Assembly (NCBI GenBank): GCA_037447605.1
Contig: CM074821.1
Location: 1 to 64,000 of the forward strand
Reading direction: 5' to 3'
Length of the DNA stretch: 64,000 nucleotides
Source of the DNA: Zygnema circumcarinatum SAG 698-1b
Lineage: Eukaryota > Plantae > Zygnematophyceae
Shown: piece after piece, positions 4,201 to 40,415 of the stretch
How positions within the stretch are numbered: position 1 is the first letter of the stretch
Layout: the number at the start of each line of letters is the position of its first letter
The notes under the pieces: generated by a model
What the model saw: only the letters and a program-made list of their open reading frames with translations
Databases searched by the model: none
What the model was told of the DNA's origin: nothing
Position numbers and translations under genes: made by a program

Positions 4201-5955
4201 AATTGCCTGCGATTGCATAAAATCCCAAAACTCGGGTGAATACACTCCCTAAGGCTTTGGTCATATCTCTCTACGGTGAAACTACCTCCCGAATGGGATC
4301 TCATTGTCATCAGCCAGTCGCAGCATTCCTGCCCGTCCTACCATCAAGATTGTCGCCAAGTTTCTTCTCGTTGTGAAACTCCTACTAAACCCTTCATGTT
4401 GTTTTTGCTGCCAACTGAAGGTCGCTGACAGATAACCACCTTCTTATGCGACCTATACCACTTTCCTGTTTTTCAAGCTGCTTCCTGGCTAAAGGCAATT
4501 CGCTTTCTTGGGAGATGGGGGGAGAGGGGAAGGAAAAGTGGCAGACGGAGAGGGAGGAGGCTCAGAAAGAGCTGGGCAACATCTGTCGCTCGAGCTAGCC
4601 ATGAGCAAGAAGCCACAGATGAGTAAGATGGACATGGACGAGCATGGGCACAGATAGAACAGGAAAAGTCGGAGCAGACGAGTTCAATAGTTGAAAATTA
4701 TCTCTTGAATAGAAAAACCTTGCCGAATTTGAGCTCAGCTCACCTATCCGAGTCTTTGAGAAAAACTGTTTCTTGCTTTCTTCAAATTGAAAGAGGGTTT
4801 AAACATATCGCGTTTCTGCAAGTGCGCCAAGGCAAGAAGGACAACTGGCTTAAGCGCATACCTCGTCCTTGGAAATGCCCTTCTTTTCATATCCCCACTT
4901 TCTTGCCAATTTGATCGCTGTTTCAACTCCCTCTGCACCGGTGTTCATCGGCAGCATCATGTCGTACCCAAACATCTCCGTCAGCGTCTTTGCAAACACA
5001 GGCAACTTGTCGTTGTAGAAAGCGCGTGAGGTGAGAGCGACCCGCTGCGCTTGGTCTACGAGGGCCTCGATGATCTTGGGATGGCCGTGTCCCTGGCATC
5101 TCCCGCGACACCAAAACGTCCAGTTCAGGAGTGCGGGGCTGCTTGATGCGACTCGACGTCAGATTCAGCTCCAGGCAGGATGGCGAGGTTCATTCAAGCG
5201 GACCATTGCTTGCGTAGAGGGCAAGGGATTTCAAGGAAAAAAAAAAAAAAACAAGTGCCTTCGTGCTAGCTGGCAGCATGCGGTACCATAAAGCGCTACC
5301 TCCCATCGTACACGCAATACAGCAAGAACTCCTTGACCAACGACGCTATCACCTTCTGGTTGAGCGTAAGCTTATACGTCTCATAACTAAAATTCTGAAC
5401 AGAACTGGCAAATTGCCAGGCAGAGAAGCCGACCTGATTGACGGCCGAGTAAGCGCTCAAGAAGTCGAGATAATGACGGCCTTCAGGATCCCACACATTG
5501 ACACCCTTGGCGCGAGCATACACCACCGGCAGCGGATGGTAGCTGCACAACCGCTCCGTCACGCATATCCATTCAGCATGCGCTCGTCAAGCATATTCTT
5601 CAAGAGACGGCTTTTCACTCAGTCTACTAAGGTGGGCGGACCAACCAATGTGAGGATTACCGAAACATTGGTTACGTCTACAGCAGAGTAATACGAAAAA
5701 CGGAAAGAAGAATTTTTGAGAGTCAGAAAAACGATTCATGCTGAGAGAAAGCAGCTCCAGCCGCGGGGGAGGACAGCGAGCGCACTTGTGCGCGCTGTGG
5801 CGCGCCTCGAGCTCCATCAGCTCGGCGCTCGCCAGCGGGCCCGCGTCGCGGCTCTCCGCCGCCGCCGCGCCGCCGTGCACGGCCGACCGGTACGCGCGCC
5901 ACCCCGCCCGCGCCGCGCTCGCCCCCGCCCTCGCCCTCGTCATGGCCATGGCCAT
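1230..5955 (-). CDS. OAT: Ornithine delta-aminotransferase (class III PLP aminotransferase), 10 exons, ~480 aa, probable mitochondrial presequence
   Basis: Phase-consistent GT-AG exons: 5786-5955, 5434-5542, 4862-5092, 4047-4206, 3560-3615, 3048-3200, 2541-2638, 2336-2416, 1929-2165, 1230-1377. Motifs: [76 protein letters not shown] (PLP Lys), [10 protein letters not shown], and the plant-type C-terminal CDRCGR. Confidence 0.96.
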
Positions 5956-6058
5956 GGCCGCCGTTCTGATGAGCGAGGGAGGGAGAGAGGGAGAGAGGGA
6001 GAGAGGGAAGGGAAGGCTTCTGCCGGGCAGAGCAGGGAAGGGACGAGACTGGGCGCTA

Positions 6059-6089
<31 letters not shown>

Positions 6090-6339
6090 GTTGGCGCCCG
6101 TCTACGTCCCTTTGTCCGTCCGTCCCTCACTCGCTCCCTCCCTGGCGGCGCCATCCGCGTGCGCGCCGTTGGAGTCGCTTCGCGTGTTTGTGTTTGTGTT
6201 TGGGTCTCCTGCTGACGTGGCTGCAATCCACAATCCGCTCCGCTGCCAGGTGGCGCGCCGCTGCCACGTCGGCGGGGGCCGGCGCCGAGGCGGGACGGGG
6301 AGGGCGCGGGCGTGGAGGAGCGTCCTGCCGCGTGGCGCC
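5956..6339. promoter_or_regulatory. Putative bidirectional promoter between OAT and CYP28
   Basis: 384 bp GC-rich interval between divergent ATGs; contains (GGCGAG)n and GA-rich simple repeats. Confidence 0.55.
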
Positions 6340-8085
6340 ATGGCTGCGACGGCGGCTCTCTCGTGCGGCCACGCGGCTGCGCGCCTCGCGGGCCTCCCCA
6401 ATGGCGCCTGCCCGCCGGCCCCCGCCCGCCTCGCGTGCAGCCGCCGGCGGGCGGCGCCAGCGTGCCGCGCGCAGGCGCGGGCGGAGGCGGAGGAGGAGGC
6501 AGAGCGGCGGAGCTGGGGGAGGAGAGCGCTGCTGGGCGCTGCGGCGGCCGTGGGGGGGCCCGCGCTCCTGGTAGGGTTGGAGGCGGAGGCGAAGGCGGAG
6601 GAGGCGAGCGAGCCGGTCATCACGGACCGCGTGTTCCTGGACTTCAGCCTCTGCCCCACGGCGGCGCGCCTCGAGCGCACGCTCGGCGACTCGAGCCTCA
6701 TCTGCGAACAGGGGGAGCCCATGGGCCGTGTCGCCATTGGCCTCTATGGAAGACAGGTACCTCGCACGGTCGCCAACTTCAAAGCTATGGTCACGGGAGA
6801 GGCGGGGTCATCCTACAAGGGCACCACCATCCACAAGATTCTGCAGGGGCAGTACATGGTGGCGGGGAGGCAGGGCGCGCTCGACAGGGGGGAGGTAGAG
6901 CCGCCCAAGCACTTGGAGCGCAACACGGAGACTGTGAATGCGACCTCGTTCCTGCTGCGCCACAGCAGGCCCGGGACGGTCTCCCTTTGCCTCGGAGCCA
7001 ACGATGACGATGATGATCGCAAGCTCAGTTCCGACTATCGGAATGTTGAGTTCCTCATAACCACAGGTCTGAACTCTTCGCATTGTTGAATGTGCATCGT
7101 CCGAGTAATGTCCACACTCGCTTTTTTCAAATGATGAATTGCAGGAAGCTGCTTCGAGGTGATCATTTCTTTAGAAAAAAAACTCTGAGCGTTGACTTAT
7201 ATGTGTTTCGTGCATTTCTTAGAATCTTACGGGGCATAAGTTTAATGTTTCAGAAGTTCAACGTTCATGTCAAGGTTCCTCAATGTGTCTTGTTGGACTT
7301 GAAGCCAGCGTATCTGAAGCGTAGCTGAAGCTGTCGAATTGATTTACAGCTTTCTGGAGGCCTGTGCAGAAGGTTGTCTGGATGAGTCTGTGAAGCAGTC
7401 CCTTGCCGCTCATGATAGGGTTTTTAACCTAAAGTCAAATACTAAAACTTTCACTAACCAGCATGTAGTTCCTAAAAGGAAACTAATCATGCAGCTGAAA
7501 GTTTAATTAATTTGTTTGTGAAGCAGTCCCTTTTACGTTTGTGTGGGATTGCTTGCTTTTGTTGCAGGTCCAGGACCCGCTCCACAACTGGATAATGGCA
7601 ATATTGTGTTTGGGAAAGTTTTGGAAGGTACATTCATTCTGCCACTGTCCGTCTGTCCGAGGATGAGGAGAGACATGTTGCTCGGTTGTGTGACAAGAAA
7701 AAAAGTAATATATAAAAAAGCGGTACATTTTTTTGTTGGAAAGGTCCACTCTAGTAAGGAATGCCTCGAGGTTTGATAACCTGACTGGAATAGAGCGGAA
7801 TTCGACAAGAATAGATGCTGTCGTTTGACAGTGTTTGGAGAGGCATGCTTGTTTACTTAGTGTTCAGGCGGAGTGGTTGGGATGGCTGGTTCTCCACGCT
7901 CCTGTTGTTTAGGAATGGACGTGATATCTGCCATCGCATCGGTGCCGACGTACAGACCCAGTGAGCGCATTCGTCAGTTCAACGAGTTCGCGGAATTTCT
8001 GGGTGACGATCGGGCCTCCAAGGGACGAAGTGTTTGGAATCGGCCGCTCAAGTCTGTTGTGATCAGGGATTGCGGCTTACTTTAA
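6340..8085 (+). CDS. CYP28: Thylakoid-lumen cyclophilin-type PPIase, CYP28-like, 3 exons, ~319 aa
   Basis: Exons 6340-7066, 7568-7627, 7913-8085. Motifs ITDRVFLDFSLCPT, GRVAIGLYGRQVP, NDDDDDRKLSSDYRNVEFLITTGPGP-PQLDNGNIVFGKVLEG and IRQFNEFAEFLGD match the plant CYP28 family. The Ala/Arg-rich transit peptide carries a twin-Arg (GRRALL) Tat-type signal. Confidence 0.9.
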
Positions 8086-33100: not shown

Positions 33101-36100
33101 GCTGGGGAAGGCGGGGGGGCGGGAGGAGGCGAGGACGGAGGGGGCGGCGAGGGAGAAGGTGGGGGTGGCGGAGAAGGGTGTGGCGGTGGAGGTGAAGACG
33201 GAGGGGGCAGAAGGGGGGGAGAGGGGGGGGGTGGAAGAGGTGGGGGCGATGGAGGAGGTGGGGGCGATTGAGGAGGTGGGGGCGATGGAGGAGGTGGGGG
33301 GGAGTGGGGCGGGAGTGGAGATGCTGATTCCACAATAGTCAAGACAAAAAAAAAAAACCACATCAACGTTAGATTTGAGCCCATGAATCTTTTGAGGTAC
33401 AGGTTGTTGGTGGTAGTTCGCTGGCTTGTCATAAATCTCAAACACAAACTGCTGGCGAGAGTGTGCGGCAACTGCTGAAGAACGTGAGCAAACAACCCTG
33501 CGGGTGGCGAACGTCTTCAGAAGGATCAACGCAATCCAACCTCTTGGTTTTAAGGGCACCCGTAGCTTACACATGTGAATGCTGTCACATAGACGTTCCA
33601 TATTATTTCAAAAAGACGACAGCAAAGACATGAAAGAGACGAACGTAGAGAATGCATGAAGAAGGTGCCAACGAGCAGAAAATTGACGGGAGAAACGGTT
33701 GGGGCCGGGACATGCATACCAAGAAAAACTCCGAAAACCTTCACTTCACAGAGAGTGAGGACAGCGTCATTCCCCGGAAGGTAGACCCACACGAAGCGTC
33801 CGACGAGGGAGGAGCACTTCTTAACGAAGGGGAAGCCGGAGGAGGTGTTGGAGTATGTGAACACGTTGGCGGGGTCGCACTCGTTGTTCCCCCGCGCGGC
33901 CCACGAGGCGTTGCTCGGCCCGAGCCACAGCGCGGCCCCGTTCAGCCGCTCCTGGCAGCACTCCGTACGGCCGTACAGCTCCACCCTCTGCACGCGCGCC
34001 GGCGAGCCGAGGTCGACCTTCCACCAAACGGGGGAGCTGCCCACGCCGAACTCCGTGTGCGTGCACGTGCCTGACCTGCGCGGGTCGTCGACAACTCACG
34101 GAATTCACACACGGAGTTTGGCACAAAGGGATGGCTCCTTCTAGTTTTTCACGTTCAGCTTGTACTTTATGTCGATGAAGTATACTTGTCTTAAGGTGGG
34201 ATGTCGTACTGACTAACACTTTTGCTTGTTTTGTCCCGTTCGGTGCAAGATATGCTTTCACTGCAGCCGGAGCCTTTGCCACATTCCTATTCCTGAAATT
34301 CATTGACGGCGTGCGCAAAAAAATAACAAGAATAGAAAGAAATAGCATCTAACGCAAAGCTTGGGGCAGCTTGAAAAAACCCTAAAATTTCTCTGAAAGT
34401 GTATATGCTCAAGTGTGGCTTATGTCACGGGACGGTGATGTACCAGAAGTTTCCGTCGGCCGTGTTCCCATCCACCGCGTAATACGCCGCGCATCCGCTC
34501 GCGTAGTTGCTGCAGTTCATGGTGGTGCTCTCGAACGAGGGGCGGCCCACCGCCAGGTTCTCTGCGGACCCCCATAACCGCCGGGCCAGCTTGAGAGGGG
34601 CGTGGTCGGTCGATTCATAGCCAGAAGAAGCGCATGAAGTCAGCAAATTCTCACCTAAAGCGACAGGAGGAGGCGGAGCAGGGCTTGGGGTGGCAGGAGT
34701 GGCAGACTCCGCCAAAAGTCGACGCCTTCGGCTGAGGTTAGCCGGGGCTGAAACTGCAGTAAAAGGCATAAAAAGGGACCATTTAAACAACCAGACACGA
34801 AACTGTTCGGGCTCACCAGAGAGAGTCAGAGAACTGCTAGCGAGTCTCTGGAAGAAAGCTGAACACTGGTCGATTTGATTATAAAACGTCTGAACGCGAG
34901 CAAAAAGACTTTATTCTGCGTGAGTTCCCAACACACTAAAAGCGAAGTTCTATGCGAATGAAGCAATGTCAATTACCAATCGACGGGAGTGGACCCCTCT
35001 CTGCATGAAGGGGAAGGCATGCATGTGCAGGAGGGAGGGAGGGAGGGAGGGAGGGAGGGAGGGAGGGAGGGAGGGAGGGAGGGAGGACTGACGCAGCGGG
35101 TAGGCGACCGGGTAGACGGGCGGGACGAGGAGCATGTTGCAGGTCCCGGGCCCCCTCTCGGCGGTGCGGCGGATGCGGAGGAGGCCGGCGGCGGGGCCCC
35201 ACGGCGCGCGCGCGAGCCAGAAGCCCTCCCCGAAGCCGACGAGGAGCAGCGCGAGGTCCACCGTGTCGCGCGTGCAGTTGCGCCCCTCGTACACCGCGCC
35301 CTGCGCCATGCTCAACCAGCGGCGACCGGAAGGCAAAGAATCGGTTGAGTTGCGAGATTGGCACAGCACCGTCACAAGCTCGCTACTGCTTCAATTTCAT
35401 GTCCAAACTTGTTGAATCAGGTTGAAAAAAAAGGAATTGTCCTAAAACATCACATGTCATACAATTAGGTAGTACTGTGAAAGGGTGCATTGTCCTACTT
35501 TGTATTCGTTTCGGACTAGAAAAAAACGCTATGGAATTTGATAAGAGCGAAAGTAAGTTCGTATTTCGCTAGTACTATTTTTTTTTCCGGAAAGCATTGA
35601 CCTCACAATGGCGACGCCATCGTCTGTGCATAGAAAATCGCTGCACTGCGCGAAGGAAGTACAAAAGTAGTCCCGCACAGCATCGAGGACCGGCGCGTTG
35701 GCCGAACCACTTTGCGACACGTGGACGAGCGGCCCCGCAACGGGAGTGTCCCCCTCCGGCCCGCGCCCTTTTGTTTGCAGCTCGGGGAGCGGCAGCCAGC
35801 TCGCAGAAATTGTCACGAACGCATCGACATGCGAATCAGGGTGTGCTAAATTCGTTTCTCTCTCACTCTTGCCACCTCGCTGTGACTGAGAGAGAAAGAG
35901 GCTGCCAAATGAAAGGGAGAGCGAGAGAAATGGATGCTTCTCTCTCCCTGTGTCTCTCACTCTCACTTCCACTCCCGCTCTCTTGCTCTTTTCCCTCACC
36001 TCGTCCTCTCATGGCTCCCTTCTCCCTCCGTCTCATGGGAGTGAGTGCAGTGTGTGAGAGAAAGATTGCGAGAGAGGGCGAAGGCTACCAAGAGAGAGGG

Positions 36101-39100
36101 AGAGGGAGAGAAAGAAATGCCTCTTTCTCACTCCTTTGCTCTCTCTCACAGCACACACACTCTCTCTGTTCCTGTTCTTTCTCTCCTGTTCCCACGCTCG
36201 CATCCGTCTCCCTCTGTGTCACGGAAGTGAGAACGAGAGGGACACTAAAGAGGAAAAAGGCTACCACGCGAGAGGGAGAGAGAGAGAAAAGGAATGCCAC
36301 TCTGTCCCTTACTCTCTTGCTCTTTCTCAAGGGACCCTCTCTCTCTCCTTCTTCTCACGTCTCTCGGGAGTGAGAGTGCGCGCGTGCGAGAGAGGGAAAG
36401 GGAGAGAGGGAGAGAGAGAGAGTGAGAGAGAAGTGCCGACAAGACCTCCTCTCCCAGTCTCCGGTACATTTTACAGTGCGACATGTGGCGTCGCACGATG
36501 ACAATCGGCCAATGACACACGTCACATTTTGGGAGCAATATCGCTGGGCGTAATAATTTGGTCAGCCTATGCCTACCAGCTGAACCGGAAACTTAAATCA
36601 ATTTAGTGACTAAATACAGTTGGGGTAAGTGCAAATGTATTTTTTTAAATACAGTTCGACGGAAATGTACTCCTGTTTAGAAGGGCAACCCGTACACCGA
36701 CTTGTGAACGCGACGAAACTTGAGGCTTTGTCTAGTCAAATTTCTTTGTATCCCTTGCTTAGTGCGGGGCATAATGAGGGGCAAGATGCGAAAGGGGAGG
36801 TAGCGAGTGCTCACCGAGCGCCAGTCGCGCAGGCCGCCCTCCGAGGAGATGCCCACGACCACGGGCTGCCTCGCCACGGCGCGCAGCAGCGCTGCCGGGT
36901 CCTCCGTCGGAACGCGCTCCCACTCTACAATCTTAGGCCCTGAAAGAATGCCTTCCTGCAAAACGGGACCCCCTTGGACTGTCAGATGTAAGCTGCTACC
37001 TTTTTGCAAGGTTTTAGCTTTTCCAAAAGCCTGAAGGAAAGGTGATCACGACGGCCCATCCTTTGCTTGAGGACGAGGAGTGAAAGGCGCCTTTGCAGCA
37101 TCCTCACCACTGTCGAATTGGTGCAGGAGCCGTGAAAACTGCCTTGCGTAGAGATGGAGCCCACAGAGGCTGCGTACTCGAGAGCGTCCTCCGTCCAGCC
37201 CCCCCGGCAGGAGCTGAAGGGCCCCGAGCAGGCGAGCAGCTGCTCCGCCGCCAGACCCGGCCCCGCGTACCGCGCGCCGCCCCGCCCCTGCGCGACCAAA
37301 AGGGCGCCCTGGAGGGCCTCCGCCGCGCTGTAGGCCCAACTCCCGTCTGCGCCCCCCCCCCCCCTCCCCGCTGCGCCGTCACTTCGCCGCATACAAATTT
37401 TCTTTTGAAAAAACGTTGAAATTCCCCCTGTTTCAGACGGGGTTTGCACAAGAGAGCCCCTAGGGGCGGGGAACGTACTGCAGGAGCCCTGGTCCTGTGG
37501 AGGCCCAAAGAGGTGCGACCAGTCCACGCTTGATGGAAGGCTGTTGCTGCTATCATAGCGGAAATGCTTGCTGAGCCGCTTCACAGTGAGGATGCGCTCC
37601 TCATCGGCCTCTAGGTTGAGCTCTAGGCCAGTGGTGCGATTGCTGCTGGGGACAGGGGAAGGGCCGACGCAGGCTTCTACATTCTCTGCCAAGTCGCATA
37701 GGCCCGTGCTCTCATCGAAGAGAAGCCCGTCCTCACAGCGTCCAGAGGCCACTTGGACTCCGTTCTGGCACGTGCAGAAGAAGCTGCACAGGCCGCACCC
37801 ACCCGCCCTTCCCAGCGTGAGCGCGCGCCCCGACGCACGCGGGGCCGCGCGGCGGCAGAGGGGCGGAACTGACCGGCAGACCGGCGGCAGGCTCCGGTCG
37901 GCGTGCACTCCGTCCGCTCTCCCGCTGCAGCATTGCGGCAGAGCCTGCGAGAGCAGCAGCATGCCCGCCCGCCCGCAGTGTGAGGTTCGCTCAGTTTCCG
38001 GACCAGCCTAACCGCTTCTCGCACCACTTCGTCAGCAGCCGCCCTTAAACTCTACCAGCGAGCGCATTTGAACTAACCTTGACAACGACAAATGAGAATT
38101 TCTTTCCAGTTTAAAGCATCTCCTAACTGATGATAGTACTTTTTTGTTTGTGAAGATCTTCAGTAATGTGATTAGGAGTTGCAAGGAGAGGGGATACACC
38201 CACAGTGTAAGGGGGTGGTGGACTGCCAGGTGGAAACGGAGGAAAAGGGGGAAAAGTCGGAGGAAAAGGAGGAGGAGGCGCGTTGCTTGGAGTTGGCCTG
38301 CGATGCCTCCCCACGCCGGGCGGGTGCCGTCCACGGGGTCGCCGCTTTCCAACGCCGGGCGGACGCTTTCCACTAGGCTTCCTCTTTCCCACGCCCGGAG
38401 GATGCCGCCCGACGCCGGGCGGGTGCCGTCGAGAGAGCAGCCAGCGGCGTGTGGCAGCGGCCTGCCCTCCCTTTGCCGCATCCCCGGACCCCCCTCCCCC
38501 GGCCTGCCCGCGGCTGGACGGCGCGAAGGCGACCTCCTCGCAGACGCTCGTGACGGGGGAGAACAGGAAGCCTTCCGGGCAGTCGGCCTCTAGGACGACG
38601 CGCCCTCCGCGGCAGCGCCGGAACGAGCTCCCGATCCTGCTCCTGCTCCTGCTCCTGCTCCAGCGCCCACGCGCGGCAGTCAGCGCCTCGACTCCGCCCC
38701 GGGACGGAGCGGGGGGGAGGGGAGGGGAGGGGCGCGGCGCGCACCTGCTGCCGCTCTGCGGCTCCGCGCGCAGCGCCACCGCCAGCTCCAGCCCGTCGCG
38801 GCGGCCCGCGCAGGGTCCGCCCCCGCCCCCGTCCCCGCCCTGCGCCCGCCCGCCCGCCGGCCCCCCGCGGTCGGTAAGTCGGTTCGGTCGGTCGGCGACG
38901 CCGGGCGGCTGACGCGGCGGCCCGCCCCGGAGGACGCGAAGGACCTTCCGTACGCCGCCGTAAGGCCGGTAGGCCGGCGACGTACGGCCGCTCTGCGACA
39001 GTTGGCTCCGCGGGCGCGGGTCCTCTCCCCTCTCTCCCCGGCCGCCCGGGCGGCCCCGCCATGGCGGGGGGGGGAACGCTCGCGCAGAGCCAGCCATGGC

Positions 39101-39325
39101 GGGCCAGGGCCATGGGCCACGCCCAGGCCCATGCTCGCGCAGACTCACCCGTTCCTCGACCGCTCCCTCGAGGCTGCTGTTCTGCGCGACGCCGCCGTCC
39201 GCCCCCGCGGCAGAGGCAGCGCCCAAATGCATAAGCAGCACCAACACGCAGGCCGCGGCGCAGAGCGTGCGCGCCACAGTGAGGCCACGCCTTTCCTCGG
39301 ACGTCAGAATGTGCCAAGAGCGCAT
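30127..39325 (-). CDS. Large secreted mosaic protein: signal peptide - CBM14-like x2 - inactive papain (C1A) domain - F-type lectin - Ser/Pro-rich rod - EGF-like x2 - LysM-like x4 (~1,300 aa)
   Basis: Phase-consistent GT-AG chain with no stop: 39149-39325, 38745-38992, 38204-38636, 37874-37944, 37479-37783, 37108-37346, 36815-36955, 35093-35300, 34655-34753, 34444-34561, 33720-34075, 32868-33323, 32089-32229. LysM exons follow at 31607-31760, 31090-31191, 30862-30978, 30511-30684 and 30127-30408. Only the 32089-to-31760 junction is unresolved: it needs a small 3n+1 exon (e.g. 31938-31974) or a weaker alternative donor. Confidence 0.75.
31049..31083 (+). repeat. (CAGTG)7 intronic microsatellite
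   Basis: Seven perfect copies read directly. Confidence 0.9.
35031..35086 (+). repeat. (GGGA)n intronic microsatellite
   Basis: About 14 copies immediately after the donor of the papain C-terminal exon. Confidence 0.9.
35880..36430. repeat. Alternating GA-rich and CT-rich low-complexity tracts in the 1.5 kb intron of the mosaic gene
   Basis: Blocks such as gagagggagagggagagaaag alternate with ctctctctcacagcacacacactctctctg. Confidence 0.75.
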
Positions 39326-39665
39326 GGCTGCACCTGCAAGGCGCAGGACGCACCGCAATCAGACATGACTGACGTGCCGCCTCGCAGCTCCTCCGGCCCG
39401 CGCGGCCGTGCTCCCCTCGCTCCCCCCCGCTGCCACCCCTCTGCCTGCCTCCCCGACGATAGAAGCGCCCGCCGGCAGCACTTGCGCACTGTTGCGTGCA
39501 GAAGCGAGCAAGCGGTACCTGCTCGGAAGTTGCGCATTGAAGCGCGTCGGCAGGTGCGGGCGGCAGCGCGGGCTGGCGCCCCAAGGCAGGCCGCGACGGG
39601 CGTCGCTTGCGCTCAACTCCGGTCCGCGTGCGTGCGTGCGTGCGTGCCCGCAACCCGCGGCCGGC

Positions 39666-39880
39666 CTCTCCCTCCTCTCTCCTCTCCCTTCTCTCTCTCT
39701 CTCCTCTCTCTCCTCTCTTCTCTCTCTCTCCTCTCTCTCCTCTCTTCTCTCTCTCTCACCTCTCTCTTCTCTCCCTTTCCCTCTCCCTCCCCCTCCCTCC
39801 CTCTCTTCCTCTCCTCCCTTCCTCCCTCCCTCCCTCCCTCTTTTTCTCTTCTCCCCTCCCTGCCTCTCCCCTCTCCCTCT
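39666..39880 (+). repeat. Polypyrimidine (CT-rich) tract upstream of the mosaic gene
   Basis: About 215 bp almost entirely C/T. Confidence 0.9.
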
Positions 39881-40415
39881 CACTCGTCGGCCGCACGCCG
39901 CCGTCCGGCCCCGCCCGCCCGCCTGCCCGCCGCCGCAGAATCGCAGCGTGGCCGTACGGCGGGGTCCGCGTGGCATGCGCGGCGTATGGAGCAGCTCGCC
40001 GCCTTCGCGTCCGTCCGAGACCGCGGGCGGCAGCGGGCGAGCGGGCGGTCGGTCGGTCGGTGGCGGCAGGTCAACGACGACGAACGTGCGCGGGCGGGCC
40101 GCCCGCCCGCCTGCCTGCAGCGAGCCGGCCCGCCAGTGGGGGCGCGCGATTGGCCGGACATGCCCGGGCCTCGAACTGTGCCCCTGCGTCACGTCCCGTC
40201 CCGTCACGATCGGGGCCCCGACGGTGACGACCCCCGTCCGTACTGTTTCGTACCATTCACACATTCCGTACCATGTTCGTACTTATCGTACTTCTCGCAC
40301 GTTTCTCCGTGGTCACGTCACGAGCACGAAAAAATGCACGTACTGTACCCCCCCGAGGCAACGAATCGGGCCGGGACCAACCCTGCATTGCGGCCGTTCA
40401 CGCTCCCCAGACCGA

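Follow-up and report, generated by a model that had tools for sequence, protein, structure and literature searches.

Papain-fold proteins that have lost their nucleophile are known from several lineages. Silicatein, Plasmodium SERA5 and rat testin have Ser in place of Cys25 and are regarded as weakly proteolytic or non-proteolytic. In TINAG/TINAGL1 and soybean P34, a C1 domain without its nucleophile has taken on a binding or matrix role within an extracellular protein. Here we describe a gene on the minus strand of a 64,000-nucleotide (nt) stretch of Zygnema circumcarinatum SAG 698-1b (contig CM074821.1 of assembly GCA_037447605.1, positions 1 to 64,000), hereafter called the window. It encodes a papain-type (Peptidase C1A) domain in which all three catalytic residues are replaced. 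We consider it rather probable that this catalytically dead fold has been retained as a non-cutting module of a large, putatively secreted multi-lectin protein. Similar to silicatein, SERA5 and testin, the window gene carries Ser at the Cys25 position. In contrast to them, it has neither the catalytic His nor the catalytic Asn, which excludes even a Ser-His chemistry. TINAG/TINAGL1 and P34 belong to other lineages, have other partner domains and are defective mainly at the Cys position. To our knowledge, none of them is fused to CBM14, F5/8C, EGF or LysM modules.

The papain domain is spread over four exons, which were searched and aligned individually, exon by exon. Exon 1 (37783-37479) contains the C-terminal half of a CBM14 module (Pfam CBM_14 at 32 bits), a linker of ~50 residues (NRTTGL...RYDS) that has no Pfam match, and the first part of the papain domain (LPSSVDW...QDQGSC plus one base). 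An I29 inhibitor prodomain was not found, as the only Pfam matches on the exon-1 open reading frame (ORF) were CBM_14 and Peptidase_C1. Intron 1 (37478-37347; GTACGT...CAG, 132 nt) is open in frame and splits the codon of Asn23 (A+AC), giving an active-site motif that reads Q-G-S-C-N-G-S-W-A-Y-S. Exon 2 (37346-37108) continues the domain and keeps the LLAC, SSC and CRGGW motifs. When exon 2 was compared by phmmer with PDB chains (expectation value, E, 2.8e-6), among them ervatamin B, the Cys25 position was occupied by Ser (AGT, 37341-37339). Exon 4 (35300-35093) has 69 codons and ends in phase 1. Its alignments with mexicain (E 4.9e-6), caricain and glycyl endopeptidase place VDLALLLVGFG opposite tDHAVtAVGYG and FWLARAPWG opposite YlLlKNSWG. 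The His159 position is therefore Leu (CTC, 35255-35253) and the Asn175 position is Ala (GCG, 35207-35205). Silicatein and cathsilicatein chains were among the PDB matches of both exon 2 and exon 4. The same three columns were substituted when the exons entered an alignment of canonical relatives as separate rows. The 34-residue end of exon 1 had no matches in PDB, being too short a query. Exon 3 (36955-36815; 47 codons, WERVP...ALLRAVARQPVVVGIS...) maps to residues ~110-141 of plant papain-like proteases, and the four exons are therefore colinear with papain.

Judged by this homology, the domain can be classed as a true member of Peptidase C1A. However, the thiolate-imidazolium pair and the Asn that orients it have been replaced by Ser, Leu and Ala, and the Cys-His-Asn mechanism is not available to the domain. 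Of the features that define an active peptidase, Cys25, His159 and Asn175 are all absent, and Gln19 and the three disulfide pairs are present. Gln19, which forms the oxyanion hole, is encoded by CAG at 37491-37489 within DQGSC. In alignments, all six disulfide cysteines (positions 22, 56, 63, 95, 153 and 200) are kept, as are Gly65-Gly66 (the GG of CRGGW) and Trp177 (the Trp of APWG). The original prediction held that the nucleophile, His and Asn were all substituted while the oxyanion Gln, the structural motifs and the frame were preserved. All codons and coordinates that it quoted are correct as read from the sequence, and the structural matches and the alignment to canonical relatives agree with it on each of these points.

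The changes in exon 4 are not limited to the two catalytic codons. Sixteen columns of this exon are invariant in four His-bearing relatives, and eight of them are unchanged in the window gene (a Tyr, Cys153, a Val-Gly pair, Trp177-Gly178, Gly185 and Cys200). Two more have changed conservatively, from Tyr to Phe. The remaining six, which are lost, are His159, Asn175, Ser176, Trp181, Gly182 and Tyr186. The loop that follows Trp177 is shorter and no longer contains Trp181, but Cys153 and Cys200 are kept. Two deletions were found in the exon, both in frame. In the alignment, the residues lost correspond to the catalytic set and the loop that shields it.

The closest relatives of the window gene are two environmental algal genes, which were reached through exon-sized ORFs in an exhaustive representative protein search. 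One lies on a 6.5-kb contig (L003, Logan SRR9302961_755322) and the other on a 1.1-kb contig (L001); a third contig, L002, carries the same gene as L001 from a second sample. This search returned mostly multi-CBM14 proteins. About 11 matches touched the papain part, and none exceeded 59% identity. Amino-acid identity among the window gene, L003 and L001 is 49-53%. All three have a CBM14 module followed by an NRTTGL-type linker without an I29 prodomain and then the papain domain. Wherever the introns can be compared, their positions and phases are the same. This includes intron 1, which interrupts the active-site motif and measures 65 nt in L003 and 81 nt, with a stop inside, in L001. The acceptor position of exon 1 is likewise present in L001. 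Exon 3 also has 47 codons in both relatives and is 62% identical to that of L003 and 53% identical to that of L001. L003 differs in its GC-poor codons and in its tail (5790-6508), which has no Pfam hit and by eye holds two Cys-rich PAN/apple-like modules followed by a Pro-rich, extensin-like stretch. A metagenome scan based on an exon-3 alignment yielded a single locus (L004), which was rejected as a high-GC bacterial contig matched in the wrong frame.

Matches to named algae are more distant. In a Mesotaenium endlicherianum protein (ME000158S01651, P0014), two CBM14 modules precede a C1 domain, and colinearity with the window gene extends from CCSG...HAD, around exon 1, through the papain domain. 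Unlike the window gene, this protein retains a nucleophile Cys (D-C-A-A-C-Y-S). Its identity is just ~26-45%, and its model ends before His159. Three Closterium proteins (CAI5459432.1, P0082; and P0088 and P0102 from NIES-65) also combine a prodomain-less papain domain with downstream LysM. These differ in having the canonical CGSCW motif, with His present in P0082 and P0102 and Asn in P0082; the sequence of P0088 ends before both. Taken together, these matches place the family in the zygnematophyte green algae. We found nothing relevant in the literature on this family or on algal papain pseudoenzymes.

Beyond what had been noticed originally, the comparison with these relatives indicates that the Cys-to-Ser change belongs to a C-N-G-S-W motif shared by the window gene, L003 and L001. 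L003 nevertheless keeps His159 and Asn175 (VDHALLIVGYG and WLARNSWG) together with the full Trp181 loop. It therefore fits a Ser-His-Asn type to which the window gene does not belong, while the L001 contig ends before exon 4. Because L003 still has both His and Asn, the loss of Cys is probably older than the loss of the other two residues. The replacement of His by Leu and of Asn by Ala has so far been seen only in the window gene and may be private to it. The Ser codon is AGT in the window gene and in L003 (4825-4827) and TCT in L001 (475-477). Each of these is one step from the Cys codon TGT and two steps from the other, which hints at either independent Cys-to-Ser changes or selection for Ser.

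A Ser that is conserved in three related genes and in two codon families raises the question of whether the domain is still an enzyme, with Ser25 acting on another base as in the silicatein model. We regard this as very improbable, since Leu and Ala, which replace His159 and Asn175, have no acid-base function. Further, in all three Ser-type genes N-G-S stands in place of the former G-S-C, which creates an N-glycosylation sequon with its Ser at the old nucleophile position. The sequon could account for the conservation of Ser in the absence of catalysis. A glycan attached to it could also occlude the cleft.

A different concern is that the gene model or the assembly is at fault and that the real transcript encodes a normal CGSCW motif, His and Asn. 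An intron does interrupt the active-site motif, and the intron 1 acceptor (37348-37347) is preceded, at a distance of four bases, by a run of 13 G residues (37364-37352). However, the same intron, in the same phase and with the same C-N-G-S-W motif, is found on two independent environmental contigs. Moreover, no choice of acceptor can bring back the Cys because the Ser codon AGT directly abuts the Trp codon TGG within exon 2. Splicing at another in-frame acceptor, 37372-37371, would lengthen the product by eight Gly-rich residues and leave the Ser unaffected. The Leu and Ala codons lie in the middle of exon 4. When the His/Asn-bearing exon 4 of a relative was used in a tblastn search of the whole window, it matched 35294-35094 only, and neither a second exon-4-like sequence nor another papain domain was found there. 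Intron 3 likewise contains no alternative exon 4. An artefact of this kind is, in our view, extremely improbable.

The DNA of this region is eukaryotic, with introns and GC-rich exons (GC, guanine plus cytosine). Intron 2 (37107-36956) is 152 nt long. Intron 3 (36814-35301; GTGAGC...CAG) measures 1,514 nt, in contrast to 65-77 nt for the counterpart introns in L003. It contains GA/CT-rich blocks, a degenerate 60-nt repeat in four copies and inverted repeats of 37-50 nt, and its bulk may represent an old insertion. Intron 4 begins, a few bases past the exon 4 donor, with a perfect (GGAG)14 microsatellite (35030-35086), which reads (CTCC)n on the gene strand. Exon 5 (34753-34655) encodes a Pro/Ala-rich linker and has the same entry and exit phases as in L003. 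Exon 6 (34561-34444) begins a lectin domain that continues in exon 7 (34075-33722), a galactose/fucose-binding type lectin (F5/8 type C, NedA-like; Pfam PF22633, 46.6 bits, which exceeds the Pfam threshold). The split codons C+TT, G+AG and TG+G link exons 4 to 7, every one of them in frame. All of the introns examined are GT..AG, and exons 1-7 have no frameshift, premature stop or broken splice site. The claim of an intact frame and intact splice sites can thus be extended to at least three exons downstream of the papain domain.

It could still be asked whether the gene is in early decay. A young unitary pseudogene would be one paralogue of a large family that has lost its function, with the exon for His and Asn drifting and frameshifts yet to accumulate. 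One point for this explanation is exon 4 itself. In Pfam PF00112 (cut-off 20.7 bits), exon 2 of the window gene scores 29.8 bits, close to L003 (32.2) and L001 (26.3), but its exon 4 scores 15.0 bits versus 59.2 bits for L003. Family signal has dropped only in the exon with the His and Asn positions. When three outgroups were used for relative-rate counts, a similar picture emerged: exons 1-3 showed no excess change, and exon 4 had 10-14 changes found only in the window gene versus 2-6 found only in L003. Other points for decay are the swelling of intron 3 by repeat-rich DNA, the absence of any transcript-derived protein, and the open frames that GC-rich DNA is expected to have by chance.

On the other hand, several observations speak against decay. 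GC at third codon positions (GC3) is 0.71-1.00 across the four papain exons and 1.00 in exon 4, versus 0.45-0.59 for the GC content of the introns. With exon 4 at 1.00 and the introns at ~0.5, third positions have not drifted toward non-coding composition. The losses coincide with the catalytic set, while the cysteines and core glycines are kept. Indels are in frame, splice sites are all canonical and conserved in position, the downstream exons remain in frame, and exons 1-3 have evolved at no higher rate than those of the relatives. The window gene is likely not a pseudogene. We would give early decay a lesser but real chance.

We therefore prefer to interpret the domain as a non-cutting module that is retained within a larger protein. 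Further downstream on the minus strand, an EGF module (32257-32084; Pfam EGF, 24.3 bits) and at least two LysM modules (30720-30499 and 30414-30130; Pfam LysM, 21.9 and 24.5 bits) were identified, and we infer that the papain exons and these modules share one transcript. The proposed protein would then consist of CBM14 chitin binders, the dead papain domain, an F5/8C-type lectin, a Pro/Ser-rich stalk, EGF and LysM. In the scenario that we propose, Cys would first have changed to Ser within the C-N-G-S-W motif, as in the relatives with His and Asn intact. The window lineage would then have lost His159, Asn175, Ser176 and the Trp181 loop once these were no longer useful. Residues that shape the fold and the cleft are still present (the three disulfide pairs, Gln19, Gly65-Gly66 and Trp177), and because all three cutting residues are replaced, the domain most probably functions in binding and not in cutting. 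It may now act either as a rigid spacer or through a cleft that binds peptides or proteins, with the lectin modules tethering it to chitin-like or other extracellular glycans.

Several points weigh against this interpretation. Although CBM14, C1, F5/8C, EGF and the two LysM modules follow one another in this order on the minus strand, in-frame joins were traced to exon 7 only, and the binding partner is hypothetical. Synonymous differences from L003 and L001 are saturated (proportion of synonymous sites that differ, pS, 0.75-0.93). Since these are the only relatives at hand, the ratio of nonsynonymous to synonymous substitution rates (dN/dS) is not computable and purifying selection is not measurable. 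The open frame is itself weak evidence because exons 2 and 4 are stop-free in all three reading frames (37108-37344 and 35094-35300), in keeping with GC-rich DNA. Exon 4 is without most of its family signal, as it would also be in early decay. Finally, searches of protein collections produced no transcript or protein of the window gene. Among these, word-indexed protein searches with the exon 1-2 ORF, exon 2 and exon 4 were blank, although this is a weak result given the length filter and the lack of any entry with 5-residue words in common with the queries.

A special case of the binding-module interpretation is that the domain acts as a decoy. Here the dead cleft would bind microbial protease inhibitors or effectors, and the lectin modules would hold it at the cell surface or on chitin. 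In plants, pathogen inhibitors are often directed at papain-like proteases, the cleft residues Gln19, Gly65-Gly66 and Trp177 are kept, and the domain is fused to the chitin-type binders CBM14 and LysM. Nevertheless, the cleft is altered, the adjoining loop is shortened and Trp181 is lost, and a glycan at the N-G-S sequon could block access to it. We consider such a role unlikely. Quite unlikely, too, is a broader scheme in which the CBM14-headed papain mosaics would form a degeneration series that runs from Cys-His-Asn (Mesotaenium) through Ser-His-Asn (L003) to Ser-Leu-Ala (the window gene). At its end, the nucleophile site would have become an N-G-S sequon and the dead cleft a chitin-tethered extracellular bait. 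If this scheme were true, the bait would capture microbial proteins or protease inhibitors and would represent an algal precursor to the decoy proteases that act in land-plant immunity.

Pseudoenzymes with a dead papain-family domain are already known, and by itself the result is modest. What the retained-module interpretation would add is a member with complete catalytic loss, beside Ser-His-Asn intermediates, in an undescribed group of secreted zygnematophyte mosaics of lectin, papain and LysM modules. Such a group provides a comparison set for working out what a non-cutting papain module does. It is also relevant to whether the closest algal relatives of land plants already had protease folds used purely for binding among their extracellular tools.

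The sequence around the gene has several features of its own. Just upstream, between 39600 and 40640, long tracts of low complexity contain CT-rich runs and CAGA-type repeats, which translate as DRQT or SVCL depending on the frame. The GC content at 38001-40000 is 0.70. By comparison, the GC content is 0.30 in the first 847 nt of the window, where a 7-nt unit (TTAAAAA/TAAAAAT) is repeated ~117 times and CCTAAAA and CCCTAAAA variants are interspersed. This repeat may be a degenerate telomere-like sequence or a subtelomeric satellite.

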